In this document: positions 18,954 to 64,000 of the stretch, in pieces
Layout: every line of letters begins with the position of its first letter
Position numbering within the stretch: the first letter of the stretch is position 1
Assembly: GCA_002269645.1 (NCBI GenBank)
Contig: NIVC01002622.1
Coordinates: forward strand, 62,001-126,000
From: Macrostomum lignano
Lineage: Eukaryota
Direction: 5' to 3'
DNA length: 64,000 nucleotides
Program-made: the position numbers and the translations under genes
Notes under the pieces: generated by a model
What the model was told of the DNA's origin: nothing
The model's database searches: none
What the model saw: only the letters and a program-made list of their open reading frames with translations

Positions 18954-29225
<10,272 letters not shown>

Positions 29226-36210: not shown

Positions 36211-39200
36211 TCACCGACAAACGCCGCAGTCTCTGATACAGCCTCGACCTCGTCCTTCCAACATCTGCTTCTCCGCCTCGTCCAGCGTGTCAGGGGCCGG
36301 ACAATTTCGAGTTTCTGGCAGCACAGCCGCCGACAGAAGACATCCGATCAGGCTAACAACGCCGCATGTGACGAGAGGCAGTTGCGGCCAAAGCTTGCTC
36401 AGCAGGGTGAGCTCCGGAGCCAGAACCCCGCCAACTCTGGCCGCCGTGGAGCCGACTCCGACGGCGGAGTTCCTCGCCGGAGTGGGGAACACCTCGCTAG
36501 CGTAGAGCCAAATCAGTTCAAACGCCAGCAAGAGGCCGAACCGACCGGTCAGGGCGAGGGCGATCGCCGCTTCCACAGGAAGCAGCTGGTTGTGACGCAG
36601 AGCAGCTGTAAGAAGGAGGGCCGCGCCGCCCACACCCATCGAACCGGCTAGAAGGCGAACCCGGCCAAGGCGAAGGCCGCAAACGGTGCCCAGGACTCGA
36701 GCGGCCACTTCAGCGCAACCGCCAAGCGCCATGGCAACGAACGGCGAACTGCCACCGTTGTTGCCTCCTGCCACCACGCCGAAGTCGCTCCAGCCGAGCG
36801 ACAGACCGTAGTAGCCGAAGCTGACCATGGCGAACACCGACCAGACGGCGAAGGCGACCGAGCGAATAACTTGGCGAGACAGCAGGTGGGCGAGTGGAGC
36901 GGTGGCCGCTACGGGCTTCTGGCAAGAGTGCTGGGTGGCTAACTGGGCCGGTGTGTTCCTAATGGGTGAAGATTGGGATGGATTTTAATGGGAGTTGAGC
37001 TTCCGGTTTGCAGGCAACTTTCGCTGATGCACAGGTTACACTCACTGATACACAGGTGACACTCACTGATGCACAGGTTACACTCACTGATGCACAGGTG
37101 ACACTCACTGATGCACAGGTGACACTCACTGATGCACAGGTGACACTCACTGATGCACAGGTGACACTCACTGATGCACAGGTGACACTCACTGATGCAC
37201 AGGTGACACTCACTGATGCACAGGTGACACTCACTGATGCACAGGTGACACTCACTGATGCACAGGTGACACTCACTGATTTACAGGTGACACTCACTGA
37301 TTTACAGGTGACACTCACTGATTTACAGGTGACACTAACTGATTTACAGGTGACACTCACTGATTTACAGGTGACACTCACTGACTTACAGGTGACACAC
37401 TGATTTACAGGTGACACTCACTGACTTACAGGTGACACTCACTGATTCCCGGTTGGCCCTCTTTGTCCTATTATTGATGGCTTCTTTTTGCCTCTATCTT
37501 ACAGGTGAAGATTCTCACTAGTACAGTATGGGACAACTACTAGTAACTGTTGATGTCCACATGTAGCAGGCGTTGTCAGACATCTGTGCCCAGAAAATAA
37601 CTAATTAAACGTATCAAAGCTCTGTCTAAAGTATCCTTACTTGTCTCGCAGCTGGTGCGGATGCAGACTCTGCAAGCTCTGCAGACCGTTCTCCTGCAAA
37701 ACTGACAAGTTCTTGCTATCTCGACGGGTTTCGCTGGTGCAGTCCGTGTCTTCTCCTTCCGATGACTGCTGACCTGACGGCTTTCGTGGTTTTCTTGTGT
37801 GTTGCTGGTGTTGCAATTGTTGATGCTGTTGTTGTTGTTGTTGTTTTATCCTCTGATGCGAGTCACGAATGTACAGATGCATCGCATTTCGACGCTCGCG
37901 ATCAGCCAGCAGACTGTCCAGGCGGTTCGTTCTTCCGTTTACGGCCGCCATTTTATGCAGCGCTGCTGTTGCGTCGCAGGCTCGACCGACCTGCGGTGCG
38001 ATGGGCGGTGAATTGAGAGGCGGGGACTTAACGACCTAGTTTTTGGACCTAAGTTGGTCTTGAAAGTGTGCCACTTATATGACTAGGCATACGGCCTTCG
38101 TATCCTTACGACCTTCGTAATGTATAAAGCGCAGGTTTGCTCTTACGCATGACCGTAATTTTGGGACTACGAGTAACATGGAGTCTCTGCTCGTGCAATT
38201 AACGGCCTTGAGGGCCAACCCACCAAGGCGCAGTGAAGTGTACATGCCTAAGGATTAATCAAGTTAGGGCCGCTGTACACTCCTGTGAGTGTGTGCCTGT
38301 GCGTATTGCTGCGGGCTGGCTTCTGCCCGAGCAGATTGAACTTTAATTTGTAATTGCCATAGACAAGTTTATTTGCCTGTACTGCGATTAGTTGGCGCAA
38401 GTGTCAAAGAGCCTTCGTGACAAAAAATAGAAATACATAAGTATTCAAGAAGACTCTGATAAGAGCAACGGCTGCAAGAGCCGAGAGTGCACGGCACACA
38501 ACTTGCGTAAATATAACGCAATACAAAAGACAGACTTGTAACAGTGGCGTCGCAAGCAGGATGAAGAGCGGTGTGAAACAACCGTCGGCTACTGACAAGT
38601 CTCCTGCTTCGCCGCTCAAACACGCCAAAATGGTGGTGATGGCGGATGCTGAAGCACAAAGTCAGCCAATAAAAGGCTCGGATGGACCAGCGCGTGCGGT
38701 AGCTGGAGCTATGGAAATCGAGCGCCTGGAGTTAGGAAACAACTACTCCCGGTGGCTGGACAGATTTACAATCGTCGCGAAGTTCTACAGATGGGACTCG
38801 ACGGCGAAGGCTCAGATGCTTCTGATGCGTCTCCCGACAGCATTGTACGACACGCTCGCAGATCAAGCTTCTCCGAAGAAACCAAGTGAGTTGTCTTACT
38901 CGGAGATAGAAACAGCTCTGACAAGCATCCTGGTCCCAGCTACGTTTGTTCTGGCGGAAAGATACTCTTTCCAGCTGTGCTCTCGAAAGTCAGGGGAAAG
39001 CGTTCGCACATATGCGGAGCGAGTCCTCAAGGCTGCGGAGAAGTGCGAATTTATAAACAAGGACGAGCGTCTGAGAGACCAATTTATTTGCGGACTGGCT
39101 GACCAAAACGTCATCGGCAAGCTGCTGGTCAAGGACCATCTGAGGCTCAGCTTCAAGGAGGCAGTTGCTGAGGCTGAAGCACATTCAGCATTAGTCTCAA

Positions 39201-42200
39201 CGGACATCATGAAGAGTGCCCCGAAATCTGAAAATTCTGGGATAATGAGCATTGGAATGTTAAAATCGTCATCAAAACCGCGGATCAAGGGAGTGAATCG
39301 ACAACAGTCACAGACTCAAAGCTCATCAAAATGCTCGCGCTGTGGAACAAGCCACGGAAAAGACGCGTGTCCAGCTTATGGAAAGACATGTCGTAAGTGT
39401 GGGAAGCAGAACCATTTTCAGAAAATGTGCCGCTCAAAGTTTGTTGTCCCGAACCAGAAAAACACAGCTGCAGTTCAGCACTTAGACGAGCACTCGCAGT
39501 CAGATCATGTCTTCATGGTTGGTGCAACTTCAAGGCAACCTTTGTCTACGGATGCAGTCGCAGTGACCCTTGACTTCATATCATCAAGTGATAAGGTATC
39601 AATTCCGTGCCAGGTGGATACTGGGGCAGCAGTTTCAGTTATGTCTGACCGGGTCTGGAAGCAAATCGGCACCCCTGAACTGCAGCCTAGCAGCATCACT
39701 TTGACAGGATATACCGACGCGCATCAATTCAAAATGTTGGGCCATTTCATCAGCAAAGTGAGTTACCAAGGAAAAGTGCACCGAATACCATTCAAAGTGG
39801 TTCGTTCTGATCGATCGTTTGCTCTACTCGGCAGGGACATTTTGACCATAGAAATAGATTTCAGCAAGGCTGATGGAAGCGAAGCGACTAGAGTATTCAG
39901 AGCGAGACTAGAATTGATTCCGGATGCTCAGCCAAAGTACATCAAGGCACGGTCGATCCCTTTTGCCTATAAAGATCGATTGAAAGATGAGATTGACAAG
40001 TTGCTAGCTGAGGGAATCATTGAGCCAGTGACTTTTTCTCAATGGGCCTCACCAATTGTCATCGTTCCTAAGGCTGATGGTAGGCTGAGACTCTGTGTGG
40101 ACTACAAGCAAACATTGAATCCACAGCTCATGAAGGACAGTCATCCAACACCGACCCCGGAAGAAGCTTTCAGTACAGTAGCAGGATGCCGAATGTACAC
40201 CATCTTGGACTTAAAAGCAGCGTACAACCAGGTGGAATTGGAGGAGGACTCAAAGCCTCTCACGGTCATGTCTACACCTTTCGGCAACTACCAGTACAAC
40301 CGTCTGGTGTTTGGGATACGGACTGCTCCGAGTATTTTCCAGCGCTACATCAGTCAGGTCATACAGGATGTTGATGGTGCAATTGCCTACGTCGATGACA
40401 TTTTAATTGGTGGTGAGTCAGAGAAGCAGCTTAAGGATCGTGAGAGTCAAGTGCGAGAGCGTCTGGAACAACATGGCCTCAAGGTCAACGAAGAGAAATG
40501 CCAGATTTGTCAGTCTCGGGTTCGCTTTCTCGGGTTTATCCTGGACAATGGCATGATCCTGCCCGACCCGGAGAAAGTGAGAGCCCTGCAAGAAATGGAG
40601 ACTCCCAAGACGATGGCAGAACTAGAATCGCTCATCGGACTCGTCAGGTTCAGTGGCTGGTTTGTGCCCAATCTGTCGCACTACCTGGAGCCGTTGACTC
40701 GATTAATGCGCGGCAGAAGAGAATTCCAATGGGATTCTGAGCAAGATGAAGCTTTTCAGCGTATCAAGTCCATGCTGACAGAAGATTCAGCTCTGGCTAA
40801 TTACGACCCCAAGAAACCTGTGGCTCTGGAGTGTGATGCTTCCCAAAAAGGACTGGGCGGAGTTCTGATTCAAGACAACAGACCGGTTTTGTACATCAGC
40901 AAAAGGTTATCAGAAGCCGAGAAGAAGTATTCTCAGATCGAAAGGGAGGCCCTTGCAATTGTCTGGTCAACTCAGAGGTGTCAGCGGTTCTTAGCGGGAC
41001 GTCATTTCAAGCTGATCACGGATCACAGACCATTAACCTACATCTTTGGGCCGAACGAGGGCTTGCCTACGCGCGTATCAGCACGCCTTCAAAGATGGGC
41101 CATATCGCTAATGGCTTTTGACTACACCATCGAGTATCAACGGTCGCAGCTTATGAAATCAGACGCTCTGTCCCGGTTGCTTAACAACGAGACGGCTCGG
41201 ACGTATACAATCGGGAGCATCCAACTACCCTCAACGATCATATCCATTCAAGAGGTTAGAGACCAATCACAGGATTGCCCAGAGATCGTTCTGTTAAAAA
41301 AAGCCATCCGGACGAGCAACTTTAACGACCCGAGAATCCGCCCCTACAAGGCAGTCGCGGACGAACTGACGATCGAGTCGGACGTGGTACTCCGGGAGAT
41401 GCGAGTCATTCTTCCAAAGACGTTGCGGTTATCGGCAGTCCAAACGGCACACAGCACACATCTAGGCATTGGCCGAACCAAGTCACTGTTAAGAGCACAA
41501 TTTTGGTGGCCCGGCTTGGATCGAGATGTAAAACAACTCATCGGAAATTGCAAGACGTGCAAAATGGTCAAGGCTAGCAATCGAAACTACCTAAAATCTT
41601 GGCCGACAGCAATGGACGCTGGAGAGCGCGTACATGCGGATTTTGCGGGTCCAATAGATGGCCAATATTTGTTGGTGCTGGTGGACGCCATGTCGAACTA
41701 CCCTGAGGTGCATCTGACCGCCAACATGGAGTCATCTACAGTCATCTCTAGGCTACGGAGAACTTTTTCGCAGTGGGGTGTGCCAAGGACACTTGTCACC
41801 GACAACGGCCCAAGCTTCGTCTCAGCTGAAACAACACAGTGGCTGAAAGCAATCGGGTGCAGCCATGTGACCACACCTCCATATCACCCTCAGAGCAACG
41901 GACTCGCAGAGAGATTTGTCCGCACAATGAAAGAATCTGTGTCAGCGTTGGGTCTGAGTCAACACAACATTGACAAGTTCCTACTGTTCTACCGATCATC
42001 CAAAGGAAACGATGGTCGCACACCGTCGGATAAGTTTCTAGGTCGAAACATCCGGACTCCTTTGATGACAGAGTTTTCTGGAGATGACAATGTGGTGTAC
42101 AGGACACAAGGAGCTACGTCACTAGCCAGAATCGTCCTGCCTACAGGCCGCAACACGGCAATCATCAAGCTTGAGAACGGCTTGTACAAGAAGGCTCACA

Positions 42201-44578
42201 GAGACCAGATACAGAGCTTCAAGGGCAGCGATGACAAGGACGTTGGCCCGGAACAAGCTACCACTGGTGCTGCTGGTGAGGTCGATCACCCTCTAGCTAT
42301 GCGCCCTGGAGAAGAGGAGCGGGAGCAGCAGCAGCAGCAACCCAGAAGAAGTGAAAGACTGAGGAACAGACCGACTGTGAATTATAAGGAGTGAACTGTA
42401 ATTTTGAAGCAGGGAGGTGCTGCGGGCTGGCTTCTGCCCGAGCAGATTGAACTTTAATTTGTAATTGCCATAGACAAGTTTATTTGCCTGTACTGCGATT
42501 AGTTGGCGCAAGTGTCAAAGAGCCTTCGTGACAAAAAATAGAAATACATAAGTATTCAAGAAGACTCTGATAAGAGCAACGGCTGCAAGAGCCGAGAGTG
42601 CACGGCACACAACTTGCGTAAATATAACGCAATACAAAAGACAGACTTGTAACACGTATGACTGCGTACGTATCCGCGCGCTTGTGTGCCTGCTCAGGGG
42701 AGTCGGCGGAATTGGCAGCAATGCCTCTCGCCGGTTGTGCGACAATGTCGCTCAAGTGCGCTAGGGTGCACACAGCCTTCTGGCAAAAAAAGTGGCAGGT
42801 TCCTTTAGACTTGTAGGAATATTTTTCGGGATTGCAGAAAGGTTTTGAGATCCCAGTATTCGAATATCTTAGTGAATGTGGAAGTGACCATTAACTTAAT
42901 GCATGTAAAATTTGAAAAGACACCCGTTTTTCTTTCAAGAGTAAAATATCTGACCCTGGAAATGGGAAAGTTCATCCTTCGGTTTATTGAAGGAATGCAA
43001 TACCGAGTTTGGCTAAAGGTCAAACCTGCATGAGCCAGCGAGGCGACTCAACCACGTAGAAGTGGGCGAGCAGCAGCAGCAGGGCCGGGGCCGAGATGAC
43101 CAGCTCGAGGTATCGCCAGTGCTGAGTTACGTAGGCTGCGCCGGTTAGCAGAAAAATTCCTGCACTCCAGCCCTGCAAGTAGTTTATTGGGTGTTTGTAG
43201 GTAATTGCGGAGTAACTCGAAACTGCACTGTTACACGTGGATGTGCAAAATGTCTTCGTGTACAGTAGGTAGGTGACGTTTTTACGGAGACAATCAGACT
43301 GGGTTTACAAAGACATCAGACTGGGTTTACACAGACATCAGACTGGGTTTACACAGTCATCAGTCTGGGTTCACGCAGTCATCAGACTGGATTCACACAG
43401 TCATCAGTCTGGGTTCACACAGTCATCAGTCTGGGTTCACACACTCATCAGTCTGGGTTCACACAGTCATCAGTCTGGGTTCACACAGTCATCACACTGG
43501 GTTCACACAGTCATCAGTCTGGGTTCACACAGTCTTCAGGCTGAGTTCACACAGTCATTAGACTGGGTTCATACAGACATCAGACTGGGTTCATACAGAC
43601 ATCAGACTGGGTTCATACAGACATCAGACTGGGTTCATACAGACATCAGACTGGGTTCACTGCTTGCCCTGTCGATTTTTGCTTTTATTTGCGCCAGTGA
43701 CCGAAGCCGAGTTAATAACTGGCAGGAAAAATTTCCTCTCTCACCTGCTTCATTAGCATAGTAAAGAGGAACCTGTGCCTGCTGTGCTGCATCTCGGTGT
43801 GCCAGGCGAAGCACACAGTCAGCAGACCGGAGGCCGCGAAGCCGGTCACGAAGCGGAACACTGCGTAGGCGGCCACCTCCTTGACGAAGGCCGCGATGAC
43901 GCCGCCGACAGCCAGATTGACGCAGGCCAACAGGTAGGCGTTGCGCCGGCCCCACCGATCCGACAAAATCCCATAGCTTGTGCTGCCAAATAGGAAGCCG
44001 AGCATAAACATCACCTTGACAACCGTTGCTATGGGTTCCCAGCCACAGACAAGACCGAACGATTCCGTCACAGTTTTAGACATCGGGTCGGAGCTGTTGA
44101 AGAGAAAGCGCTGGCAAGGTATTCCGGCTGCAGAAGGAACGCTGCCGTTCTGAGTCGCCTCTGGCGCCGATGTCGGACCGGGAATCTGACAGCTGCTCAA
44201 GTTGGACACCGAGGCCCAGTCGATTGAAGCTGCAGCTGAGGAATTATTCGAGCCGAAACCGGTGGCGCAGACGAACGGGCGTCTCAGCATGGTGAAATTC
44301 ACCGAGTGAATCTGCATCGACGGAAACGCGACAGCCAGCGCGATTGTGACCATGAAGGCGGCCTGGTACTTGTGTCGCCGGCCCACCACGTTCATGTACT
44401 CGTCAAATGTCGGCTCCAAGCTGCCGCCCGACATCAGAGACTCCATCGAGCCGGCTGTCCGCTTCAATTGGTGCTGCTCAACTTTATCTAAGTCGTTTCC
44501 TTCTTCATCATCGTCCTCGTCCGCTCCATCTAGCTGATCTTTGATCTCGCCGACAGCTTGTTTTACAGGCTCCTGCAT
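36211..44578 (-). CDS. SLC22A: Organic cation/anion transporter, SLC22 family (MFS)
   Basis: Exons 43745-44578, 43026-43172, 37641-37990 and 36211-36958, with consistent phases. Motifs [48 protein letters not shown] and VLPETRN. Confidence 0.93.
37020..37445. repeat. 21-bp minisatellite, block 3
   Basis: Array in SLC22 intron 3. Confidence 0.95.
38307..42654 (+). mobile_element. Intact Ty3/Gypsy LTR retrotransposon (Mag-like)
   Basis: 237-bp LTRs TG...CA at 38307-38543 and 42418-42654, identical by eye. 5-bp TSD CGTAT at 38302-38306 and 42655-42659. PBS TGGCGTCGCAAGCAGGA at 38545. PPT AAGCAGGGAGG at 42407-42417. Confidence 0.97.
38561..42394 (+). CDS. Gag-Pol polyprotein (Gag-PR-RT-RNaseH-IN), 1277 aa
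   Basis: Twin Cys/His knuckle ([23 protein letters not shown]), protease VDTGA, RT LCVDY/YVDD, RNase [16 protein letters not shown], integrase [20 protein letters not shown]. The domain order is that of Ty3/Gypsy. Confidence 0.97.
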   Translation: MKSGVKQPSATDKSPASPLKHAKMVVMADAEAQSQPIKGSDGPARAVAGAMEIERLELGNNYSRWLDRFTIVAKFYRWDSTAKAQMLLMRLPTALYDTLADQASPKKPSELSYSEIETALTSILVPATFVLAERYSFQLCSRKSGESVRTYAERVLKAAEKCEFINKDERLRDQFICGLADQNVIGKLLVKDHLRLSFKEAVAEAEAHSALVSTDIMKSAPKSENSGIMSIGMLKSSSKPRIKGVNRQQSQTQSSSKCSRCGTSHGKDACPAYGKTCRKCGKQNHFQKMCRSKFVVPNQKNTAAVQHLDEHSQSDHVFMVGATSRQPLSTDAVAVTLDFISSSDKVSIPCQVDTGAAVSVMSDRVWKQIGTPELQPSSITLTGYTDAHQFKMLGHFISKVSYQGKVHRIPFKVVRSDRSFALLGRDILTIEIDFSKADGSEATRVFRARLELIPDAQPKYIKARSIPFAYKDRLKDEIDKLLAEGIIEPVTFSQWASPIVIVPKADGRLRLCVDYKQTLNPQLMKDSHPTPTPEEAFSTVAGCRMYTILDLKAAYNQVELEEDSKPLTVMSTPFGNYQYNRLVFGIRTAPSIFQRYISQVIQDVDGAIAYVDDILIGGESEKQLKDRESQVRERLEQHGLKVNEEKCQICQSRVRFLGFILDNGMILPDPEKVRALQEMETPKTMAELESLIGLVRFSGWFVPNLSHYLEPLTRLMRGRREFQWDSEQDEAFQRIKSMLTEDSALANYDPKKPVALECDASQKGLGGVLIQDNRPVLYISKRLSEAEKKYSQIEREALAIVWSTQRCQRFLAGRHFKLITDHRPLTYIFGPNEGLPTRVSARLQRWAISLMAFDYTIEYQRSQLMKSDALSRLLNNETARTYTIGSIQLPSTIISIQEVRDQSQDCPEIVLLKKAIRTSNFNDPRIRPYKAVADELTIESDVVLREMRVILPKTLRLSAVQTAHSTHLGIGRTKSLLRAQFWWPGLDRDVKQLIGNCKTCKMVKASNRNYLKSWPTAMDAGERVHADFAGPIDGQYLLVLVDAMSNYPEVHLTANMESSTVISRLRRTFSQWGVPRTLVTDNGPSFVSAETTQWLKAIGCSHVTTPPYHPQSNGLAERFVRTMKESVSALGLSQHNIDKFLLFYRSSKGNDGRTPSDKFLGRNIRTPLMTEFSGDDNVVYRTQGATSLARIVLPTGRNTAIIKLENGLYKKAHRDQIQSFKGSDDKDVGPEQATTGAAGEVDHPLAMRPGEEEREQQQQQPRRSERLRNRPTVNYKE
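43295..43660. repeat. 22-bp minisatellite (TCATCAGTCTGGGTTCACACAG)
   Basis: Array in SLC22 intron 1. Confidence 0.9.
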
Positions 44579-50187: not shown

Positions 50188-53100
50188 CATGGAGTCAACT
50201 GAGCTGTACCGGCTAATCTGCGATCCAAGTCGGACGAGCTATGCAGAGCTCTAACACTGCTGGACAAGCCGTCCGATGCAGACGTAACGGAGATCCTACG
50301 TCGTTGTAGTCGTCGCAGAACAACCTATTTGCACCTGCTGATGCTGCAGCTTCGTCGACTGTCGAATCGATGCAACGGCGACATCGGTTTGGCGATCGCC
50401 CTCGCCTATCGGTTGGCACTGCGTGGCTGCGACGTCAACGGGCAGAACCTGGCTGGCAACACGGCGCTGCACATGGCCTGCTACCGGCCTGCTGGGGACC
50501 AGCTGGCTCAGCATCTCATCCGGATGGGTGCGCCCGATTTCTGAGAGGCTGTGGCTCATAATTTTGGGGGAAAGTGGTTGAATTGAGTGACGCTCATACA
50601 GGGTGTACAGCAGTTCTGACTCTTAATCGTCACGCGGAGTCTGAGGCGTTACTCGCTGAGATATTACATGTACTCATCTGCACTGAGAACTCGGGGATCT
50701 TTTAGTTGGTCCTTGCAGATGCGAATTTGATGACAAGCCCCATTATCAGTGTCCGCAAAAAAACTTTTACAAATTACTTCGTGAAGAACAACACGGAAAC
50801 AATAATTGGCTAACTTCGTTTTCAAACACAAAGGCGCCGATCCTGGCATAAAAACGAACGAAATTGGCGAGTGTTTCACGACAACCGGCAGCACAAGGTC
50901 TGGCTGATTCGCAGCAGCACTGCCGCAAATTGCTGCAGCATGTGGAGTGCAGGTGCGGATCTTTTGCCTGGTTTATGCTTGGTCAGCTGTGCAGAAGGCG
51001 CTGCAAATTTTGCTGGTGGCATGGTTTTCACCACTTTCGGAATTCCGAATTGCACTCGCGGTGCACACACGAGTTTGTTAAGAAACAGTTAGAAAAGAAT
51101 ACTGTTGAAGAGAGGCACCGCTTGACAGTACGCTGAATGAGGTCTCATCTTCGACAAAATTTGGTCGAGAAAAAGTGATTGGAAGTCAGAAAACATCAAG
51201 CAATGAGTTTAAAAACTGCCAAAAATCGGTTTCCAGCAAAATTTGCAACGAATTAAGAGTACATAGCATCCATGGGTTTATGGACTATTCTTTCACCTGC
51301 CTGTCATTCTACCATACTCGTATAATAAACCTGCTGTTTTCCAAGTTTGCGACGGAGTATGGCTGGCTGGTGAGTACAATATCAGGCTTGAATTAAGTTA
51401 GAAAATTTACATGCACCTTTGTAGGTACAGCTAATATTAGAATTCTGTAAGTAGTTTAGCAGTAGGTAGTATCGCAATGTGTATCTATTTTTTGTGAGGT
51501 TAATTTAACTGAATCACTTTTATTTTATCAATTTTGACGCGTCACAATTTAACCTAGACGTGAAGGCTTTGAAATAGTTTTGTCACGTCACGGCGAAATC
51601 GAAACACAACCCATTGGGATGCCAATGTTTAGATCCAACTTATTTATAAAATTATTCAAAGTGATCGTTCTCTAGTGCTTTAGGTTGTGGCCACCCTGAT
51701 GCAAAGCCTTCGGCGATATCGTCCAATAACAATTCCAACGCTGACAGGACGGCAATCCTACCAATCCCGCTGATTCCTGAGCACACTCAGGCACAGCACT
51801 CGTACATTGGCCCTGACTTTCGAATCGTCAGGCATGTACAATCTGTGTCTCTCTGCCTTGGGGGTTGGCCCTAGTGGCTGTGAATCCCACGACGACAAAT
51901 TTCATGCACAAGCACCAAATGAATGTGGCTGTGCAGGGAATCGAACCCTCGGGGTCTTGCCCTTAATGGTTAGAGTCAATACTCAAAGGTTAGGCTCAAA
52001 GTAGCTAGTTTACAAACGCTCTACCTTGTACTCAAACTTAGTTGCCAGGGAGGACACGGCTCTGGTTGCGAAATACCTGAACTCATGGATTCGAGTCGAC
52101 TCTCGTAGACGACGCAAAACTCTGCTGCAGTTGAGCAACGAGACTGGCAATTATGGCATCATCCGGCTGATGGAGAGGCACTCGAACACTAACGAGCTGG
52201 TGTGCAGGGCTCTGGCCTGCGACTGCGACGGAGTTCGCCAACTGCTGGCTCTCAAATCCGGTATGAACCTTTCACAAGTGCTACTTACATATAATTCTAA
52301 TAGCCGTCATTTGACCCTTCTCGTTGTGAAATCGAACCAGCAATCATCCGTGATGCACAATGCACATTGATTGTTGTATAATAGGGGCTGTTTCGAGTCC
52401 TTTAAGCGGCCACATTCATTTAATGCTTTTGCTTTGCTTATCTACGTGGCGCAGAGAGTGTACGTGCCTGACGATTAGAAAGTCAAAAGGCCCCTGTACA
52501 CCCTGTGCGAGCGTGTGTACGAGTGTGTGCTGTAGTAGCGCTGTAGACTAGTCTTCGCTTTATTCAGCTTTTTTACTCCGCAAAAATATTGTCCCCAGAC
52601 AGGCCAAATGTTTCCACGTGCGACAGCTCACAGAAGATCCCAAAGCCACTGCTGGCTGAGATGCGACTGCTCTCCCAGGTGCCAGGTGCTCAGGAACTCT
52701 GCGGACTGCTGCGCTCAGCTGGGGCACCCGATGAGTCACAATATTTTGGTGAGAAGGTTTTAGACTTTAGGTTGTTACCCAGTGATGCTCAGTGGTTACT
52801 AAGTCATGGCTTGTGGTTACTAAGTGCCTCTAATCATCCGTGCCATGATGTCCAACAGCCCAGCTGGAAACAAGTCGACGCTCGTTTCGCCTGTCCCAAT
52901 TCTACCAGCTGGTTCAAACCGGGTCCACTGACAGCTTGGCTCAAGCGTGGAGCGAACTTGACGCCAAGCGGGTTGACGTGGATTGCATTGACGAAGAAAC
53001 TGGAGATACTTACCTGCACTGTGTGGTGCGAAGGTGAGCTCTTTTTTGTTTTTACCTGGCCCTTGAACTTGTCTCACCAACCACCTCACTCCACACCTCT

Positions 53101-56100
53101 TCACTCCGAACCCCCTCACTCCGCACCCCCTCACTCCACACCCCTCACTCTACACCCCTTCAAGGACAAGTAGTTCTTGCACCCCTTCACTCCACATCCC
53201 CTCTCTCCACACCCCTCACTACACACCCCTCACTCTACACCCCCTCCCTTCACACCCTCTCACTCCACACCCCTCACTCCACACCTCCTCACTCCACATT
53301 CCCCACTCCACACCCCTCACTCCACACCCCTCACTCTACACCCCTTCAAGGACAAGTAGTCCTTGCACCCCTTCACTCCACATCCCCTCTCTCCACACCC
53401 CTCACTACACACCCCTCACTCTACACCCCCTCCCTTCACACCCCTCACTCACACCTCCTCACTCCACATTCCCCACTCCACACCCCTCACTTCACACCCC
53501 TCACTCACACCTCCTCACTCCACATTCCCCACTCCACACCCCTCACTTCACACCCCTCACTCACACCTCCTCACTCCACACCTTCTCACTCCACATTCCC
53601 CACTCCACACCCCTCACTTCACACCCCTCACTCACACCTCCTCACTCCACATTCCCCACTCCACACCCCTCACTTCACACCCCTCACTCACACCTCCTCA
53701 CTCCACACCTCCTCACTCCACATTCCCCACTCCACACCTCCACTCCGCGACCCCTCACTCTACACTCCCTACTCTACTGCAGGCACGCATCGGCAGGCCT
53801 CACAGAGCGCAGTCGGCGCAGCTTGGTCCGCCTCATGTACAAACTAGCTCTGGAAGGCATCGATCTACAAGCCAGAAACGTCGCCGGAGACACCGCCTTG
53901 CTGACTGCGGCCAACCCGACTTCGGCGATGCCGTCGGCCTCCTTGGCAACTCTTCCACCGGACCGTCAACTACTGGAACATCTTCTTCGCCTGGGCGTCG
54001 ACGCGGGACTTCGCGGAGCCGGTGGTCGCGGTCTGGCCTCGTCTAGCTTCGGTCCCGACCTCCGACTGCAGCGAGGCGGCTGCCCGCGTTTTCGGGTGCC
54101 GGGACTGACAGCGGCGGTCCGCGACGCCGACGTCGGTCGAGTGCGTCGCTGGTTGGCGAGCCTTGGCCGTGTTGAAGCGGTCAGCAACGGCAGGAGCCTC
54201 CTTCAACTGGCAAGGGAAGCTGGTGGCGAGGTGGCCCGTCTGGTGGAGGCGGCCAGGCAGACGACGGAGTTCGCTGCGGCGGTGATGGCCGGAGATTTGG
54301 TTGCCATGCGGCGATGGCTGGCGATGGGCGGCGCAAATCGACTCGTCAACGCCTGGTTCCGGTAAGGGACTTTAATCTCTGAGGCAGAGCAGCTCAGCCT
54401 TTAGAGAGTCTGACTTTGCACCAGAGTACCCAAAGTATTAATTTGGGACTTGTGCAGGAATATTGGATTGGGGCTTGACTTTCTATGTCGCCCATGAGGC
54501 CCAACCTCCCAACCTACCTACAAGAGTTTGTTCATGCCTAACAATGAAAAGCCATGGCAAAGTCGCTGACAGCACAACAGGTCGTTTGGACGGGCATCTA
54601 GGGCTGCGATGGTGACTTGCTCGTTGCTGATTTTGAAGGCGTCGTGCAGCAAGACAGCCTCGAACAACTCCTGGAACAAGGCCGCCCTCTGGCGGCCTTG
54701 AACTGAAGAAGGCAACTCAGGCAAGCCCGCGACGATGCCGCAGATTTTCGTAGACGCTGGACAACAGACCACCCGGATTAACGAACTGCTGACATCGACA
54801 GGCGCACACACTCGATGTTTTGTAGACACCGACACCCTGGACTCGGTCGGCTTGCCCTGTGGCGCTGTTTTCATAAGACCTGACAGCGTTTATTTTGTTT
54901 TTTTTGTAGACCCGTGCCTGCGTTCGAATGTCCGTGTGCGCGTACTCTGGGATCAGCAGAATAGTCTCTCCTGCTTCTTATCGCTAAGTCGGCTTCGGCA
55001 CTCCTTCTGCAAGCTAGCAAACACTCCCAACAACCTTAAAATTATGGGTTTTTATCTAGCTACCTCTACCTCATAGCTTACCTACACCATCCCCATCCGC
55101 CTCATTCCTGCTCACCCACTCACCCGCCTTCAGCTTCCACTTCGTTGGCCTCAGTACAGACGGCCTGACCCCTGAGTTCGCCAACCGCCCTTTGCTCGCC
55201 GCAGCCGTAGAGTTCGCCCCAGCCAGCGTTGTCGACTGTCTGCTTCGCTTTGGAGCTCGTCTCGACGTCCAGTGCGAGGAGAGACACCCCTGCGGCCCGG
55301 CCGCTTTCTGGGCATTCAACGACGCGCCGTTTGGTGCGGCCGTAGGCGGGACGGCCGTCGCCGAAACCGTAGCCGCCTGGGCCGACGCTCGGCATCTCAG
55401 AGACGAGCTCGGGCGCACGCTTCTGCATGCAGCCATCGAGTGGCGCGAACTCAACGATGAGGAAACGTCGTCAACGCCTAACTCAGAAGATTTAGCATCG
55501 GGGGCTAAGTCGCCTGCGCCTCCAGCGACTCTATTACAATCGAAATCGTTTCATTCAATGCTGAACTCAGTTCGGCCTGAGTCTTCGCTTAGACGGTGCC
55601 TCAGATCGACGTCATTTTACACGTCGTCTAAAGTGCAACCGTCCACCGAGTCCAAAGTGCAACCGTCCACCGAGTCCAAAGTGCAACCGTCCACCGAGTA
55701 CAAAGTGCAACCATCCACCAAGTCCAAAGTGCAACCATCCACCGAGTACAAAGTACAACCGTCCACCGAGTCCAAAGTGCAACTTTCCACCGAGTCCAAA
55801 GTGTCGCTGTCAGAGGCCAGACATCGAGTTATTCGCCGTCTGTTAGCACGAGGGGCACCGTTGGCCGCTCGCGACGCATCAAGTCGAACAGCTCGAGACT
55901 TGGCTAGTGCCGTCGGTGACTTTGAAGTCTGCCGCCTGCTCGACAATCACGTGACCGAGTTGGCCCGTCGAGGCGATCTAGACAGCGTCGAGCAACTGAT
56001 TCTCGAAGCCTACGACGCAGGTTTCGACGGCGCCACGGCGTTAATCGCCGCTCGGCGCCACGATCGCGATCTGCTGCGCTTGCTAGGCGAGACGCCGCGC

Positions 56101-57277
56101 TACCGGCGCCAAATCGCCGCGCTACACGCATCCATAGCCACCGGAGGTGCCGTCGCCGCTGCTGCTTTTGCTCGATTTGCCGGTGAGAAACGGCTGGCGC
56201 TCGGCTTGGACCGACGTGGCCGCAACCTCCTGCACGCCGCCGCGCTGTCCGGCGACGCCGCACTGGCCGGCTCCGTGGCCGAGCGGCTTCCTGCGCTGGC
56301 TGGACAGGGCGACTGTCTGGGTCGGACACCGGCGCACTATGCGGCTTGTCTGGCCGACTCGAAAGCGACGCTGTCGGCAATTTCTCGAGCGATCGGCGGT
56401 TTGGACATGTCGATTAAAGATGCCGTGAGGATTTGCGATTGACTTCTTTAGTAAACTGTCTATATATGCTCTCGACGAGTAGCAAGTGGCGTTATTAGTC
56501 AGGTTGAGTGAAAAAACTGATGGCTTTATTATGACTCTAATATTCAAATTGGGCGCCCATTTTTTCAATTGGACACCTATGTATCTCTTATCTGGGCGCC
56601 CCAGTGTTTAAGTTCGGCGCCACTGTGTCTGAATTGGGTATACCAGTGTGTCTGAATTGGGTACACCAGTGTGTCTGAATTGGGTATACCAGTGTGTCTG
56701 AATTGGGTATACCAGTGTGTCTGAATTGGGCGCCACCGTGTCTGAATTGGGCGCCACTGTGTCTGAATTGGGCGCCACTCTGTCTAAATTGGGCGCCACT
56801 GTGTCTGAATTGGGTATACCACTTGCACTGTCTGAATTGGCGTCGCCCTCGTAGAAATAGGCTGCTTATACTACTTTCTGTAAGTAGTAAAAGAGTTTCT
56901 TCCAGAAAAGAAACTGAATGCCAATACAAATTTTGCAGAACAATCTCAGCGTATTTGACTATCTAGAGCAGATGGATCGGCCAACACCGAAAAAACTGAA
57001 GTCGCCAAGCAGAAGAATACTTAATTATCAGGTAAGAGTGACTTCATTACGCTTGTATAAAGCTTTACTTTTCTCTAAACCTAATTATTAGCGTTTTAAA
57101 TCTGCCTAAACCTGCTTAGGTTAGAGATCTAATAGACATCGAGCGGAGAGCTACAGTTTCAGTTGGCCCAGTTATCAACGAAATCGCTGCTGCGTCAACC
57201 GAAAACGACTCCGAATCGACTGACAGCCAAAAGGCTGACACAGACTTGCCTATGATTCGCATCGATATCGTCGATTG
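50188..57277 (+). CDS. Multi-exon ankyrin-repeat protein (uncharacterised); at least one frameshift in exon 1
   Basis: Ankyrin motifs DVNGQNLAGNTALHMAC, DLQARNVAGDTALL, DELGRTLLHAA, DRRGRNLLHAAAL and DCLGRTPAHYAA. Approximate exons: 50188-50529, ~51349-51372, 52042-52260, ~52599-52747, ~53782-54361, ~55155-56426, ~56968-57031 and ~57126-57277. Confidence 0.7.
51750..52000 (-). mobile_element. tRNA-derived SINE, family B
   Basis: Reverse complement has B box GGGTTCGATTCCC, then GCCAACCCCCAAGGC..TGTACATGCCTGACGATTCGAAAGTCAGGGCCAATGTACG core. The head and linker differ from family A. Confidence 0.7.
52445..52535 (+). mobile_element. SINE core fragment, family B
   Basis: GAGAGTGTACGTGCCTGACGATTAGAAAGTCAAAAGGCCCCTGTACAC. 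Confidence 0.6.
53085..53775. repeat. C/A-rich low-complexity array (CACACCCCTCACTC) with a 186-bp higher-order duplication
   Basis: CCCTTCAAGGACAAGTAGT is repeated 186 bp apart, at about 53156 and 53342. Confidence 0.85.
55628..55805 (+). repeat. In-frame 24-bp coding minisatellite (SKVQPSTE x ~7)
   Basis: AAAGTGCAACCGTCCACCGAGT(C/A)C units inside ORF 55192-56442. Confidence 0.9.
56600..56820. repeat. 21-bp minisatellite (GTGTCTGAATTGGG[TATA/CG]CCA)
   Basis: Intronic tandem array. Confidence 0.88.
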
Positions 57278-57329
57278 AACGGTGAATTACGATTTTTGTT
57301 TAGCATACATCTCAACCCCAGCCCACTAA

Positions 57330-57965
57330 CTGATGCGGCTTTCCTTACCCCTCAACCCCACTCCACTATCTTATGCGGCTTTCCTTACCCCTCAACCCCA
57401 CTCCACTATCTTATGCGGCTTTCCTTACCCCTCAACCCCACTCCACTATCTTATGCGGCTTTCCTTATCCCTCAACCCCACTCCACTATCTTATGCGGCT
57501 TTCCTTACCCCTCAACCCCACTCCACTATCTTATGTGGCTTTCCTTACCCCACCCCATTATCTGATACGGCTTTCCTTACCCCTCAACCCCACCCCATTA
57601 TCTGATACGGCTTTCCTTACCCCTCAACCCCACCCCACAATCTGATGCGGCTTTCCTTACCCCTCAACCCCGCCCCACTATCTGATGCGGCTTTCCTTAC
57701 CCCTCAACCCCGCCCTACTATCTGATGCGAATTTCCTTACCCCTCAACGCCACCCCACTATCTGATGTGACTTTCCTTACCCCTCAACCCCACCCCACTA
57801 TCTGATGCGGCTTTCCTTACCCCTCAACCCCGCTCCCACTATCTGATGCGGCTTTCCTTACCCCTCAACCTCGCCCCACTATCTGATGCGGCTTTCCTGA
57901 CCCCTCAACCCCACCCCACTATCTGATGCGGCTTTCCTTATCCCTTAACCCCGCTCCCACTATCT
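57330..57965. repeat. 40-bp minisatellite (ATGCGGCTTTCCTTACCCCTCAACCCCACTCCACTATCTT)
   Basis: About 15 copies. Confidence 0.92.
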
Positions 57966-58190
57966 GATTGGACCTTTCTCACCCCTCCATTGCCAATGCT
58001 AGAAAAAGTATCAAGCTAACATCCGTCAAAAAATCTGAAACTTTGATTTGAATCCCAAATAAATTTGAACGTCCAAACACTGGTGTTAAAGTTATCATCA
58101 TTTTATTTGTCATTTTCTTTTATTACCATCAATGTACATGCTCAGTCAGAATGGTGTAACATTCGATTAGCGAGTGCTCGACCTCGTCAG

Positions 58191-59054
58191 TCAGTTGTCG
58201 TAGACATAGCCAATCGGTGGGCCGCCCTCCACCTCTTCGCACATGATCTCGTACTTCAGGCACAGTCGCAGCACCTGCAGTCTGTACTTTTGCTGCGACT
58301 CGTCGCTTAGGTACCGCCGAATGCGTCTCTCGCCCATGCCTAGTTCCGATGACGTCATAGCAGCTTTGCCGTCGCGAGCGTCGCTAGATTCATCGTCGAC
58401 TAGTGTAGCGGCCATTGTTGTGGAGACAATGACAGCCAGCAGTAGGAGAGCTGAGGGTTGGAGTAGACCGACTGAATTGATGGATTTGACAAATGGTGGT
58501 GGGTTCGTGTAGGATTGAGCTCGTTTTTACTCAGCTATAGAATTTCTGTTTGCCTCAATTGAGCTGCAGTGAATCGTGAATGTCTGCTTGAAAGACGAGA
58601 CACAGCAGGGCGTTGCGATTTTAAACAACAAGAAGGAGCTCTATTTTTGCCAAAATACAAGCTAGTCCTTGTGCAGTTCGTAATTACTGCCTGTATGCTA
58701 AGCATCCACAACTTTATCACCCATCACCTCAGCACCCACCACCTCAGCACCCACCACCTAAGCACCCACCACCTAAGCACCCACCACCTCAGCACCCACC
58801 ACCTCAGCACCCACCACCTCAGCACCCACCACCTCAGCACCCATCACCTCAGCACCCACCACCTCAGCACCCACCACCTAAGCACCCACCACCTAAGTAG
58901 CACCCAGTTACTCAGCACCCACCACCTAAGCACCCACCATCTAAGTAGCACTCAGTTATTCAGCACCCACCACCTCAACATCCACCACCTCAGCACCCAT
59001 TCTAAGATTAATAAAAAACAAAATAAAGTTTTTCTCACCAATGAATGACTCCAT
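58191..59054 (-). CDS. Putative secreted peptide-hormone/neuropeptide precursor, 98 aa
   Basis: Exon 1 is 59039-59054 (ATG GAG TCA TTC ATT G|GTGAG) and exon 2 is 58191-58471 (AATTCAG| acceptor). The phase-1 join gives MESFIVGLLQPSALLLLAVIVSTTMA-ATLVDDESSDARDGKAAMTSSELGMGE-RRIRR-YLSDESQQKYRLQVLRLCLKYEIMCEEVEGGPPIGYVYDN. Confidence 0.7.
58715..59000. repeat. 15-bp minisatellite (CACCCACCACCTCAG)
   Basis: Array within the intron of the putative prepropeptide gene. Confidence 0.92.
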
Positions 59055-59989
59055 GTTTTTGGAAGTTGCGTTTTTAAGTTTTTGCTTTTGTATTTTTTGT
59101 TGTTGCTGCTACTTAATCAGCACAGATCGGGACACCAAATATGAGAAGAGGCCGACAAGGTACCGACAGTCCCTTTAAATGATTGCAGATGTAGTCATAT
59201 TCCCAGTCACAGTCAGTCTCAGCCAGTCAGAGTCCGGCTATTCTCATTTGCTCCTTGTGCTCCGATTCGCTGAAGAGAGAGAATCGGCACTGATGCAGAG
59301 CAAACTGGTGAAAAAATTCCTAAGAATATTAATAAGGCCCAACTTCATTAGTGCCTCTGAGAGTTCATTAGCCGGTAAAGGTGCTTATAGCTGCTGGGGC
59401 ACCAGGGGCTAATGCTGACTTTATGACCTCCATTCGTGCAGGATAATTTCCTGAAGAAGATCTCCGTCTTCCTATTGCCGGATGCAATCTCCAGCCGTCA
59501 GATAATATCCGCAGTAGCCAGGCCATCCGGCAAGGGGCTAAGCCAGCTGCCTTATCTATTAATCTGGCTGTCCCCAAGCTGTGGAAGTAACGAACCGTTG
59601 ACGACACGCATGTAACCAATTCCTTGTGTACTCTTGATTGGAATGACCAGCGCTGACCCAGCTGAGCCCGTCTCGAATCCAGCTGCCCGAGCGATTCCTA
59701 ATCCTGTAATCTCTGTTCTGAAATTGATCCAGCCGATATCGTCAGACATGTACGCTCGTACCGATTATCAAGGACTGATAAAATTTGGGATACATCGGTG
59801 ATAGACAAATTTACAAGGCCTTCGCTTGGCACTGATAAATATATATATCGTTTCGATAGAGGCCTTAATCTTATTCATTTCCTGATGAATTTGGTGCAAA
59901 AATCGACTGTACAAAATGAAAACTAATGTTAATACAAAAACACGAGCTACATGCATGTACTACAGTCACAACACAAAGCTCCAGAACGA

Positions 59990-60547
59990 TCAGTTCCACA
60001 GCCTGCCAAAATCAACTCCGAAGGACGAGTCGAAGACGCTGAATCCGACCTTCCTGCCCAGCTGGAAACCAGTGCCGAGCACCTTGATCGTCAGCGAGTC
60101 GTCCACGATCCCGATGGCGGACGAGACGCCCAGACCGAGGTTGACGTCGAAGGCGGACATGCGACCTCCAGCGAGGACGAGCTTCGCCCCGTAGCCGAGG
60201 CATGTCGGCCCGGCGAATGCCGACACCTCGGCGCCGAACACGGTGAAATCGATGGTGTCGAGCGGCGTCTCTCCAGAGTTGACCTTCATTAAGCCGGCTC
60301 CGATGAGGTACTCGATCTTCGGGCCGGTGTAATTCTTGGTCACCTTCACCGCGGTCTCGATGAATCCGACCGTGTGCTCTTCAAATTTCTGCAGGCGACC
60401 TTCAACTGCTACGACGTAGGCAGACGATGTGTAGGCCATGGAGTCGTAATCCGCTGCCGTCAGGATCTCGTCGACGCTGTACTCAACATCAGCATTCAGA
60501 TTGTTTTCCAATTTTTCCTTGATTGTTGTCTCTAGGCCCGCAGTCAT
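59990..60547 (-). CDS. Uncharacterised intronless 185-aa protein with a Gly/Ala-rich amphipathic beta-strand C-terminal half
   Basis: ATG-initiated ORF with coding-like GC3 bias. C-terminus is FGAEVSAFAGP..FDVNLGLGVSSAIG..KVLGTGFQLGRKVGFSVFDSSFGVDF. Confidence 0.75.
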   Translation of the reverse strand: MTAGLETTIKEKLENNLNADVEYSVDEILTAADYDSMAYTSSAYVVAVEGRLQKFEEHTVGFIETAVKVTKNYTGPKIEYLIGAGLMKVNSGETPLDTIDFTVFGAEVSAFAGPTCLGYGAKLVLAGGRMSAFDVNLGLGVSSAIGIVDDSLTIKVLGTGFQLGRKVGFSVFDSSFGVDFGRLWN

Positions 60548-61374
60548 GGTAACTGGTTGGTTTTTGGATATCTAAAATTGGAATTCGTCAGCATGGAGCA
60601 GCAAAGTCGGAGGGTGGTCGGTTCGGTTGGTCACCCTAATTTGGGGTTTCTCAAGATACATTCCGGGTCAAGAAACGCACAATGCGTTACACACTAAGCT
60701 GACAAATATCAGGCTGCAAGCACAACCGTTGTGTGCGTCCCTGCACAGGAATAGGGTAAACAAGATTAACAAGGTTAACAAGATTTTAACTTACCTTACT
60801 GATGAAAATTTAAGGACCTTGGGGCTTAAGAAGTGTTTAAAGTTAACAGTTTTTTGTCGCATGGAATTTTATCTATTCGGTTTCGAATTTCCAGGGCACG
60901 ATGAAGAATATTATTTGATGCGCATCTACCCAAGTTATAGTTTTATTTATACTGTCGGCTAGGACGAGTGGTACCACCCCCTGCCGTGCGCGAGCTACTA
61001 CTAGAGACTACACGCTCAGCACAAGCACAATAAGCTAACTGATTCTGCGCTGACAGACGCAGATTCAAGAGAATTTCCCAAGCAAACAATGCCGCGAGAT
61101 GAGAGTCCACTGACCACGCGCTGAACAATAGGCCATGAGTGAAATTTACTGACCCTGGCGAAGTTGCTTGCTAGAAAGACGAGGGCTTTGCTTTTCTTGG
61201 AAAACTCTGTTTTGCCAGGCATTTCGCTCAGGGCGTAAATGACACATTGCAGGTTGTTTACAAGAATCTGGACTACAAACTGCTCCTAAAATAACTCTGC
61301 AAATTATTTACAACCAAAGTGCCGCTCGAAAATGCAGGCTTAATCAGTGAGTTCATTACAGTGAGGCCTCTCCA

Positions 61375-62616
61375 TTTCTCACCTGTGATGTGTCTCCATT
61401 TCTTAGCTGTGATGTGTCTCCATTTCTGACCTGTGATGTGTCTCCATTTCTGACCTGTGATGTGTCTCCATTTCTGACCTGTGGTGTGTCTCAATTTCTG
61501 ACCTGTGATGTGTCTCCATTTCTGACCTGTGATGTGTCTCAATTTCTGACCTGTGATGTGTCTCCATTTCTGACCTGTGATGTGTCTCAATTTCTGACCT
61601 GTGATGTGTCTCAATTTCTGACCTGTGATATGTCTCCATTTCTGACCTGTGATGTGTCTCAATTTCTGACCTGTGATGTGTCTCAATTTCTGACCTGTGA
61701 TGTGTCTCCATTTCTGACCTGTGATGTGTCTCAATTTCTGACCTGTGATGTGTCTCAATTTCTGACCTGTGATGTGTCTCAATTTCTGACCTGTGATGTG
61801 TCTCAATTTCTGACCTCTGATGTGCCTCCATTTCTGACCTGTGATGTGTCTCAATTTCTGACCTGTGATGTGTCTCAATTTCTGACCTGTGATGTGTCTC
61901 AATTTCTGACCTGTGATGTGTCTCCATTTCTGACCTGTGATGTGTCTCAATTTCTGACCTGTGATGTGCCTCCATTTCTGACCTGTGATGTGTCTCAATT
62001 TCTGACCTGTGATGTGCCTCCATTTCTGACCTGTGATGTGTCTCAATTTCTGACCTGTGATGTGCCTCCATTTCTGACCTGTGATGTGTCTCAATTTCTG
62101 ACCTGTGATGTGTCTCAATTTCTGACCTGTGATGTGTCTCCATTTCTGACCTGTGATGTGTCTCAATTTCTGACCTGTGATGTGTCTCAATTTCTGACCT
62201 GTGATGTGTCTCAATTTCTGACCTGTGATGTGTCTCAATTTCTGACCTCTGATGTGCCTCCATTTCTGACCTGTGATGTGTCTCCATTTCTGACCTGTGA
62301 TGTGTCTCAATTTCTGACCTGTGATGTGTCTCAATTTCTGACCTGTGATGTGTCTCAATTTCTGACCTGTGATGTGTCTCCATTTCTGACCTGTGATGTG
62401 TCTCAATTTCTGACCTGTGATGTGCCTCCATTTCTGACCTGTGATGTGTCTCAATTTCTGACCTGTGATGTGTCTCAATTTCTGACCTGTGATGTGCCTC
62501 CATTTCTCACCTGTGATGTGCCTCCATTTCTGACCTGTGATGTGTCTCCATTTCTGACCTCTGATGTGCCTCCATTTCTGACCTGTGATGTGTCTCAATT
62601 TCTGACCTGTGATGTG
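61375..62616. repeat. 24-bp minisatellite (TTTCTGACCTGTGATGTGTCTC[A/C]A), ~51 copies
   Basis: A homogeneous array that explains the long repetitive ORFs on both strands. Confidence 0.97.
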
Positions 62617-63450
62617 TTTTAATTGATTGGTAGCAATTCCAAGAAAACCCATCAAGACACCAAATATTGGCGCCCCCTAGGGTTGCGGCCCTCACCAGTT
62701 AAAAACTATTGCGTACACAACTACATCTATCCTTAAAAATTGTGATGCATGTCGTCTGTCCCTCCGAATATTGATTCTCGATTTCTACATTATACCGTAT
62801 ACAGAAACATACCGGTTATAACCTGGGTCATTTTTTAAACTACTATAAACAGTGCGAAAGTTAAAAAGTATGCCAAAAGTCAAGTGTACACGTACTTTAT
62901 TTACTATAGCTGTTTACACCTGACTGGAGTTTGAACGAGCAAATTACAATTCGCGGGAGTGCTGCGGCACACTGGTGCAACGCTTTAGGCCACTTGTGTA
63001 CATTGTGCTGCTCGGGTGTACATGTACAGCGGCAATAACAATTCCTCGGCCCATTGTTTTCGTACGTGCACAAGCCTCAAATGAATGTGGCCGCGCAATA
63101 TTGCATTTGCCGCTGAGATATGCGCTTAAGCTACTTTTAGTAGAGCGAAAAAGTTCAATTATTTATCCTATTATTTATGCTACCCGCAAATTAAGTGAAA
63201 TTTTGAACAAATGCAAATTTGCATCATTGAGAGAGCAGCAATTTAAATGACACATAGTGAGCAAGTTTTAAATCAATAGAGTTCAATGCAGTTGAAGCAC
63301 AGTTGAAGAATATTTGACAAATACTAAAGTGCTACTAGTACACCAAATACTACTTAATTATAATCACAAATGATCTGGATAGCTCAGTAGGCACATGGAT
63401 TTATTTTTGTGTAAGAAAAAAGACTTGGTGTACAGGGATGCGAAACGCAC

Positions 63451-63893
63451 CCTCTACAATGAACTGGGGCCCTCTCAAATGAACTGGCGCTCTCTCAAAT
63501 GAGCTGGCGAGCTTTACAATGAACTGGCACCCCCTCAAATGAACTGGCGCCCTCTACAATGAACTAGCGCCATCTACAATGAACTGGCGCCCTCTACAAT
63601 GAACTGGCGCCATCTACAATGAACTGGCGCCCCTCAAATGAGCTGGCGCCCTGTACAATGAACTGGCGCCCTCTACAATGAACTGGCGCCATCTACAATG
63701 AACTGGCGCCCCCTCAAATGAACTGGCGCCCTCTACAATGAACTGGCGCCCTCTACAATGAACTGGCGCCATCTACAATGAACTGGCGCCCCCTCAAATG
63801 AACTGGCGCCCTCTACAATGAACTGGCGCCCTCTACAATGAACTGGCGCCCTCTACAATGAACTGGCGCCCTCTACAATGAACTGGCGCTCTC
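63451..63893. repeat. 20-bp minisatellite (GAACTGGCGCCCTCTACAAT)
   Basis: About 22 copies. Confidence 0.95.
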
Positions 63894-64000
63894 CCCACTG
63901 AAACTCCTACCTACACACTCAATGTAATGAAACGCGAACGGTTTAGCTTCGCACGCCACTGACTCCGATCAACTCGAGTTCAACTATCAGACGATCTCCA

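Follow-up and report, generated by a model that had tools for sequence, protein, structure and literature searches.

In the 64,000-nucleotide (nt) stretch of the genome of the flatworm Macrostomum lignano analyzed here (contig NIVC01002622.1 of assembly GCA_002269645.1, hereinafter the window), a small two-exon gene occupies positions 58191–59054 on the minus strand. Our best explanation as a whole, which we hold with good although not full confidence, is that this locus is a second copy, uncalled on NIVC01002622.1, of the M. lignano gene Mlig027809.g2. The product is probably a species- or genus-restricted orphan secreted prepropeptide that is cut by a convertase, as suggested by its sequence. 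The original prediction for this locus, made from the DNA letters, had proposed a hidden two-exon precursor of 98 amino acids (aa) and a candidate novel peptide hormone with a Cys-x6-Cys ring. The gene is hidden on NIVC01002622.1 only; the sister copy on another contig is already annotated. Both contigs belong to NIVC00000000, the annotated Mlig_3_7 genome (PMC5730564), and all coordinates given below without a contig name are window positions.

The gene comprises the following elements, with splice junctions marked by a slash.

59183–59055, minus strand: putative 5' untranslated region, A-rich.
About 59181–59173, minus strand: candidate TATA-like element, CATTTAAAG.
59054–59039, minus strand: coding part of exon 1, ATGGAGTCATTCATTG, 16 nt, encoding M E S F I and the first base of codon 6.
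ATG of exon 1, minus strand: start context AAAAACATGG, with A at -3 and G at +4.
Just after 59039, minus strand: exon 1 donor, G/GTGAGA, read directly.
59038–58451, minus strand: intron according to the annotated sister model, 588 nt, GTGAG...CCCTCAG.
58999–58718, within the intron: minisatellite with a 15-bp unit, CACCCACCACCTCAG, 18.4 copies.
58472/58471, minus strand: acceptor of the original prediction, ...CAATTCAG/TCGG, ~570 nt past exon 1 (TTCAG/TC, exon from 58471).
58471–58451, minus strand: stretch between the two acceptors, 21 nt, the inclusion of which adds 7 residues (VGLLQPS); possible alternative 3' splice site.
58450–58191, minus strand: coding part of exon 2, including the stop at 58193–58191, encoding the rest of the predicted signal peptide (ALLLLAVIVSTTMA), an acidic pro-region, RRIRR and a 40-aa tail.
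58124–58102, minus strand: two AATAAA poly(A) signals, 66 and 83 nt past the stop.

The motifs can be read directly in the sequence, and identity to a model built from transcripts shows the gene structure. The sister copy, ~99% identical at the DNA level, is located on NIVC01004501.1 and is represented by the 91-aa model PAA47294.1 (UniProt A0A267DF70) of gene BOX15_Mlig027809g2, which carries the GenBank title 'hypothetical protein BOX15_Mlig027809g2 [Macrostomum lignano]'. This gene is called at positions 9139–9897 of the extracted NIVC01004501.1 locus, ~870 nt downstream of the copy of a 185-aa gene, g1. Position 9139 is the ATG of an identical 16-nt exon and position 9897 is the last base of an identical stop codon, which bears out the claim that a 16-nt exon across a minisatellite intron supplies the missing start codon. 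The gene neighborhood is common to both contigs, with an Arf/Ras-like gene followed by g1 and then by the peptide locus. Thus, the two copies are alike in the ATG exon, the stop, the gene structure and the g1 neighbor, and differ in the contig and in the minisatellite length, the aligned sister copy being without 105 nt of the 15-bp intron repeat. The annotation of the NIVC contigs was derived from RNA-seq, using StringTie/TACO, a de novo transcriptome, TBONE cuts at spliced leader (SL) and poly(A) sites, and TransDecoder open reading frames (ORFs) (PMC5730564), so that the sister model reflects assembled transcripts and not an ab initio prediction. The 185-aa ORF of the window is an annotated protein on NIVC01002622.1, and the locus there matches window positions 54990–64000 with 100% identity over 9011 bp. 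The GenBank record of NIVC01002622.1 calls no gene between the 185-aa neighbor and window position 54990, and hence this contig lacks an annotation for the peptide gene. It is also missing, as originally stated, from the program-made ORF list, which at this locus shows solely an internal 74-aa ATG-initiated ORF (58191–58415).

The two copies allow the choice between two CAG acceptors, which are in frame with each other and 21 nt apart, to be addressed. With exon 1 joined at 58471, the frame is open over 297 nt and encodes the originally proposed 98-aa product without any difference. The sister model, however, uses the next CAG (CTCAG/CT), 21 nt downstream, equivalent to window position 58450, with a product that starts MESFIALLLLAVIV... 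and lacks the 7 residues that the 58471 acceptor would add; the shorter, 91-aa product is therefore the likely one. Indeed, the only canonical GT-AG join that yields 91 aa is that of exon 1 with exon 2 after the CAG located 21 nt past the 58471-type acceptor, and the sequence predicted from this join matches PAA47294.1/A0A267DF70 residue for residue. By exact look-up, the protein collections contain neither the 98-aa form nor the 74-aa ORF product of either copy. The best-supported product of the window copy (exon 1 joined to exon 2 from 58450) is MESFIALLLLAVIVSTTMAATLVDDESSDARDGKAAMTSSELGMGERRIRRYLSDESQQKYRLQVLRLCLKYEIMCEEVEGGPPIGYVYDN, 91 aa, of which 89 residues are identical to those of PAA47294.1; the differences, I5F and an M/V exchange in the pro-region, leave the 40-aa tail untouched. 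Exon 2 most likely starts at 58450, and the 58471 acceptor may be used sometimes: given that there is no AG in the ~50 nt upstream of 58472, this site is a reasonable acceptor that could give rise to a minor isoform. The secreted product would be the same with either acceptor because VGLLQPS sits within the predicted signal peptide, before the hydrophobic core. The donor GTGAG and the acceptor CAG match the splice motifs of the species. In the 246 intron nt that precede the acceptors, the copies differ solely at 58502 and 58495, with C in the window and T in the sister; these positions fall where a branch point is expected (CTCAC in the sister vs CCCAC in the window).

In-phase splicing alone is weak evidence for a gene because the 1518 nt preceding the acceptor contain 36 ATG...GT mini-exons that would join in phase without a stop. 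Only one of these 36 phase-compatible mini-exons, the 59054–59039 exon, has the donor GT[G/A]AG, the top cis-donor motif in M. lignano (PMC8629364). The coding sequence (CDS) has a G+C content of 0.55, with 0.60/0.40/0.65 at the three codon positions vs 0.55/0.41/0.76 in the neighboring gene, and 0.37–0.49 in the flanks and the intron. The codon-position G+C, the AATAAA signals, the start context and the absence of any further ATG from the ~140 nt that precede the start codon all support coding. We also considered SL trans-splicing as the source of the start codon, given that the M. lignano leader itself ends in ATG (PMC8629364). This option is rejected: the leader ATG is out of frame with either acceptor, 58471 or 58450, and opens a 30-codon frame ending in TAG, so that the leader cannot replace exon 1. 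An Rfam search found no RNA family in the window.

The elements that would govern processing of the precursor are encoded in exon 2.

58328–58314, minus strand: RRIRR codons; the motif, read directly, fits the furin/proprotein convertase (PC) consensus R-X-[K/R]-R, with cleavage predicted after it.
58313–58194, minus strand: predicted 40-aa C-terminal peptide YLSDESQQKYRLQVLRLCLKYEIMCEEVEGGPPIGYVYDN, with 7 acidic and 4 basic residues, net charge about -3.
58262–58260 and 58241–58239, minus strand: the only two Cys codons of the precursor, with six residues between them (C-LKYEIM-C).

The hydrophobic leader, the acidic spacer, RRIRR, the 40-aa tail, the Cys-x6-Cys arrangement and the absence of an amidation Gly before the stop, all described in the original prediction, can be read in the sequence. 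The hydrophobic core, ALLLLAVIV, reaches a peak 9-residue Kyte-Doolittle value of 3.56 at residues 5–13, and T-M-A/A, which fits the -3/-1 rule for signal peptide cleavage, is the most likely cut. The following course of events would account for these features. Exon 1 would supply the ATG and 16 coding bases upon removal of the ~0.6-kb minisatellite intron; the N-terminal hydrophobic stretch (ALLLLAVIV, then STTMA/A) would direct the protein into the endoplasmic reticulum and then be cut off; a furin/PC-type convertase would cut after RRIRR, releasing an acidic 27-aa pro-piece and the acidic 40-aa peptide; and the two Cys residues of the latter may form one disulfide, within a chain or between chains. 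Residues i and i+7 of a helix are too far apart for an intrachain disulfide, so that, should the Cys segment be helical, a disulfide-linked dimer would be the alternative to the intrachain bond.

Immediately upstream of the peptide gene on the same strand is the unrelated gene g1.

60547–59990, minus strand: g1, 185 aa, single exon; 936 nt from the g1 stop to the peptide ATG.

The g1 copy on NIVC01004501.1 is BOX15_Mlig027809g1, with a 97% identical protein. The g1 and g2 genes of the sister contig have the prefix Mlig027809 in common and unrelated sequences. In the naming scheme used there, a common prefix marks genes that were cut from a single 'transcriptional unit', which is often a precursor with multiple trans-splice sites (PMC5730564); this suggests that g1 and g2 were assembled as one primary transcript. 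The peptide gene thus appears to be cut from a primary transcript in common with the 185-aa gene 936 nt upstream, a spacing that is below the 1-kb distance limit used for calling operons in M. lignano (PMC8629364). A strong pyrimidine-tract acceptor (CTCTTCAG/CG / TTCTCTCTCTTCAG/CG) is present at 59265–59280 on the minus strand (near 59272), 218 nt before the peptide ATG, in agreement with the trans-splice acceptor motif YTNCAG of the species; the terminal ATG of a leader added at this acceptor would open a 17-codon upstream ORF. The g1 protein itself is Gly/Val-rich, encoded without introns and contains no Pfam domain. Its only relatives outside M. lignano, with 53–61% identity, come from contigs of ~1 kb in marine metagenomes (TARA, SOLA, Logan); a fibronectin type II domain occurs in one of these, and none of the contigs carries a peptide gene.

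The peptide exon is also part of a different, independent gene model from another M. lignano annotation, the 286-aa UniProt entry A0A1I8G3H0 ('Ysc84 domain-containing protein'). This model consists of g1 without the final 8 residues, an intergenic exon of 25 aa (59723–59649) and exon 2 from 58450; its C-terminal 86 residues equal the window product from the junction Ala, so that the acceptor is, again, 58450. It carries the AAMTSS allele of the window, at the sole position in the shared part where the copies differ. Pfam detects no domain in A0A1I8G3H0, and the Ysc84 label was not reproduced. Compared with the window product, the model, probably an artefact of prediction, is fused to the upstream gene and an intergenic exon and is without the ATG exon 1.

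The protein searches for relatives covered cluster representatives only, a scope in which the sister PAA47294.1 itself is invisible. This protein is filed in a 90%-identity cluster represented by the unrelated 185-aa neighbor (BOX15_Mlig027809g1), evidently because the fused A0A1I8G3H0 drew it into the cluster of the neighbor, and was missed for this reason. A word-index homology search with the 98-aa product gave 0 matches. HMMER comparison of the exon 2 product with 1.84 billion representatives gave one match, to a 2178-aa repeat protein (E = 1.9e-6), which we rejected as spurious because it involves the leader and pro-region only (query residues 13–57), at 23–28% identity, in five weak repeats. 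Pfam contains no family for the peptide product, the search of PDB sequences with the 40-mer returned nothing below E = 0.28, none of the 422 pattern matches in a scan of the JGI metagenomes was confirmed by tblastn, and tblastn and blastn within the 64-kb window found no paralogue. The searched collections apparently hold no genomes or transcriptomes of other Macrostomum. The literature and supplements searched make no mention of Mlig027809, and expression or functional data were not found there. No known family matched in these searches; the protein as such had been deposited already, as PAA47294.1/A0A267DF70 and within A0A1I8G3H0. For the segment after RRIRR, the conservation of which the original prediction had named as a check, no relative was found outside M. 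lignano in collections apparently without other Macrostomum, and the identity of the two copies in this segment reflects their ~99% identity throughout.

Among the known systems, the product resembles precursors of the allatostatin-C/somatostatin type in layout: a predicted signal peptide and a spacer precede a basic cleavage site, after which comes one C-terminal peptide containing two Cys six residues apart. The allatostatin-C ring follows the consensus C-[YF]-F-N-P-[IV]-S-C, with about one residue after the ring. The window ring, CLKYEIMC, is unlike this motif, and is followed by 15 residues in a 40-aa, acidic peptide, in line with the original observation that the Cys spacing is the same and the sequence different. 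No profile or sequence match to the allatostatin-C/somatostatin family was detected (Pfam, 1.84 billion representatives), and we reject kinship with allatostatin-C, given that both the sequence and the position of the ring fail the family motif. With generic furin/PC-processed secreted pro-peptides (toxin, growth-factor, gland), the product shares an acidic pro-region ending in R-X-R-R and a C-terminal product with a candidate disulfide; it has one possible disulfide only and no similarity to a described family, so the likeness is one of layout. By its sequence, then, the product is classified in kind as a convertase-type secreted pro-peptide, and the gene as a copy of the one that encodes the deposited hypothetical protein PAA47294.1.

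Several observations weigh against this interpretation. The GenBank CDS is a TransDecoder longest-ORF call, which is no proof of translation, and transcription of the window copy is read across from the ~99%-identical sister locus. The copies differ at 58502 and 58495, 24–31 nt upstream of the first acceptor, and therefore the choice of acceptor could differ between them. No relatives outside M. lignano were detected among the protein representatives, Pfam, PDB sequences and JGI metagenomes. The n-region, MESFI, contains no basic residue. The single-sequence AlphaFold2 model is poor and unreliable (mean pLDDT, the predicted local distance difference test score, of 53.6). Finally, purifying selection is undetected because the divergence between the copies in exon 2 (CDS) equals that in the non-repeat part of the intron (0.8% in both, compared to 2.7–4% in the flanks); the CDS differences amount to two amino acid changes and one silent substitution. 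With copies this similar, a test of selection is uninformative, as is the identity of the 40-mer between them, since they are ~99% identical everywhere.

Of the more specific alternatives, the one that survives best, a serious possibility that we nonetheless rate below probable, is that the protein is a lineage-specific exocrine product of the gland, epidermal, gut, prostate or seminal-fluid type, from which the pro-region is removed constitutively and which has no signaling function. The secretory features, the orphan status and the furin-type site are all compatible with such a product. Small fast-evolving secreted orphans are common in the reproductive and gland tissues of Macrostomum, and their frequency favors this possibility. 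Nevertheless, the sequence points to no tissue, with no repeats and no glycosylation-rich or adhesive-type composition, and the 40-mer is not cationic, which makes an antimicrobial peptide unlikely.

A hormone role for the 40-mer is possible, judging from the precursor layout. In its full form, as proposed originally, with a neuronal or endocrine 40-mer that is stored in dense-core vesicles, contains a Cys-x6-Cys ring and acts on a receptor, we find it doubtful. Many prohormones have this layout, in which a polybasic site separates a signal peptide and acidic spacer from a two-Cys peptide at the C-terminus. Allatostatin-C/somatostatin-type precursors contain one peptide copy, at the C-terminus, and the single C-terminal copy in the window product favors a hormone precursor in the same way. 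However, there is no amidation signal, the R-X-R-R furin-type site serves constitutively secreted proteins as well, and the 40-mer is long and acidic (net about -3). Furthermore, no flatworm or other proteome searched contains a relative, the literature searched provides no expression data, and the transcriptional unit is apparently shared with an unrelated gene, which would be unusual for a neuropeptide gene with cell-type-restricted expression.

It is also unlikely that the transcript is real and the 91-codon frame is a chance or newborn ORF that is either untranslated or gives a product without a role. The lack of detectable homologues and of detectable selection between the copies is what would be expected of such a frame, the GenBank CDS is a longest-ORF call, and ORFs of ~100 codons are common in the window. 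Conversely, the codon-position G+C periodicity resembles that of the neighboring real gene and not the AT-richer flanks, the ATG that opens the frame is the first past the putative start and sits in a good context, and the co-occurrence of a leader, RxRR and paired Cys in one short frame seems unlikely to arise by chance. Very improbable is the structure implied by A0A1I8G3H0, in which the peptide exon, joined at 58450 to g1 and the 25-aa exon 59723–59649, would be the C-terminus of a 286-aa protein with the hydrophobic stretch internal and no signal peptide: in GenBank, the annotation based on transcripts keeps the two genes apart, g1 has a stop codon of its own on each contig, a strong ATG exon would have to be skipped, and fusion of neighboring genes appears to be a common predictor artefact in operon-like units.

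The rest of the window fits a repeat-rich animal genome. An uninterrupted 1277-aa Ty3/Gypsy-type pol ORF (38561–42394, plus strand), with protease, reverse transcriptase, RNase H and integrase, looks like a young long terminal repeat retrotransposon, and a G+C-rich block (0.56–0.63) at 2296–7486 on the minus strand contains ORFs resembling long interspersed nuclear elements, with reverse transcriptase, RNase H and a weak endonuclease match. There are at least 18 minisatellite arrays in the 64 kb, including those at 61369–62624, 57311–57968, 53084–53774 and 34492–35429, with examples such as 24 bp x 52, 40 bp x 16.6 and 21 bp x 45, so that the minisatellite in the intron of the peptide gene is ordinary for this region. 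The 15-bp and 40-bp arrays vary in length between the sister contigs, with 105 and 122 window bases, respectively, left unaligned. An ankyrin-repeat ORF of 416 aa with an 8-aa tandem repeat, SKVQPSTE (55192–56442, with 52026–54365, both plus strand), probably belongs to a larger gene with several exons; the ORF at 55192–56442 is uncalled in the GenBank record. Exon-sized ORFs match the MFS/sugar-transporter family (43712–44578, minus strand) and the tubulin-tyrosine-ligase family (20510–21265, plus strand), which points to further host genes in the window.

In practical terms, the GenBank annotation of NIVC01002622.1 lacks one copy of a small gene that has transcript support, and the gene itself is already listed as a hypothetical protein in GenBank and in UniProt (A0A267DF70). 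Apart from the 21-nt shift of the acceptor, the gene model proposed originally is right. A more far-reaching proposal, for which the odds appear poor, is that the 40-mer is a signaling molecule restricted to Macrostomum, be it a hormone, a neuropeptide or a mating pheromone, that its family has no described relatives and that it is produced from the downstream gene of an operon-like unit. If true, this would be an unusual, recently born peptide signal that is co-transcribed with an unrelated gene, and would add a lineage-specific ligand to this flatworm model of regeneration and mating.

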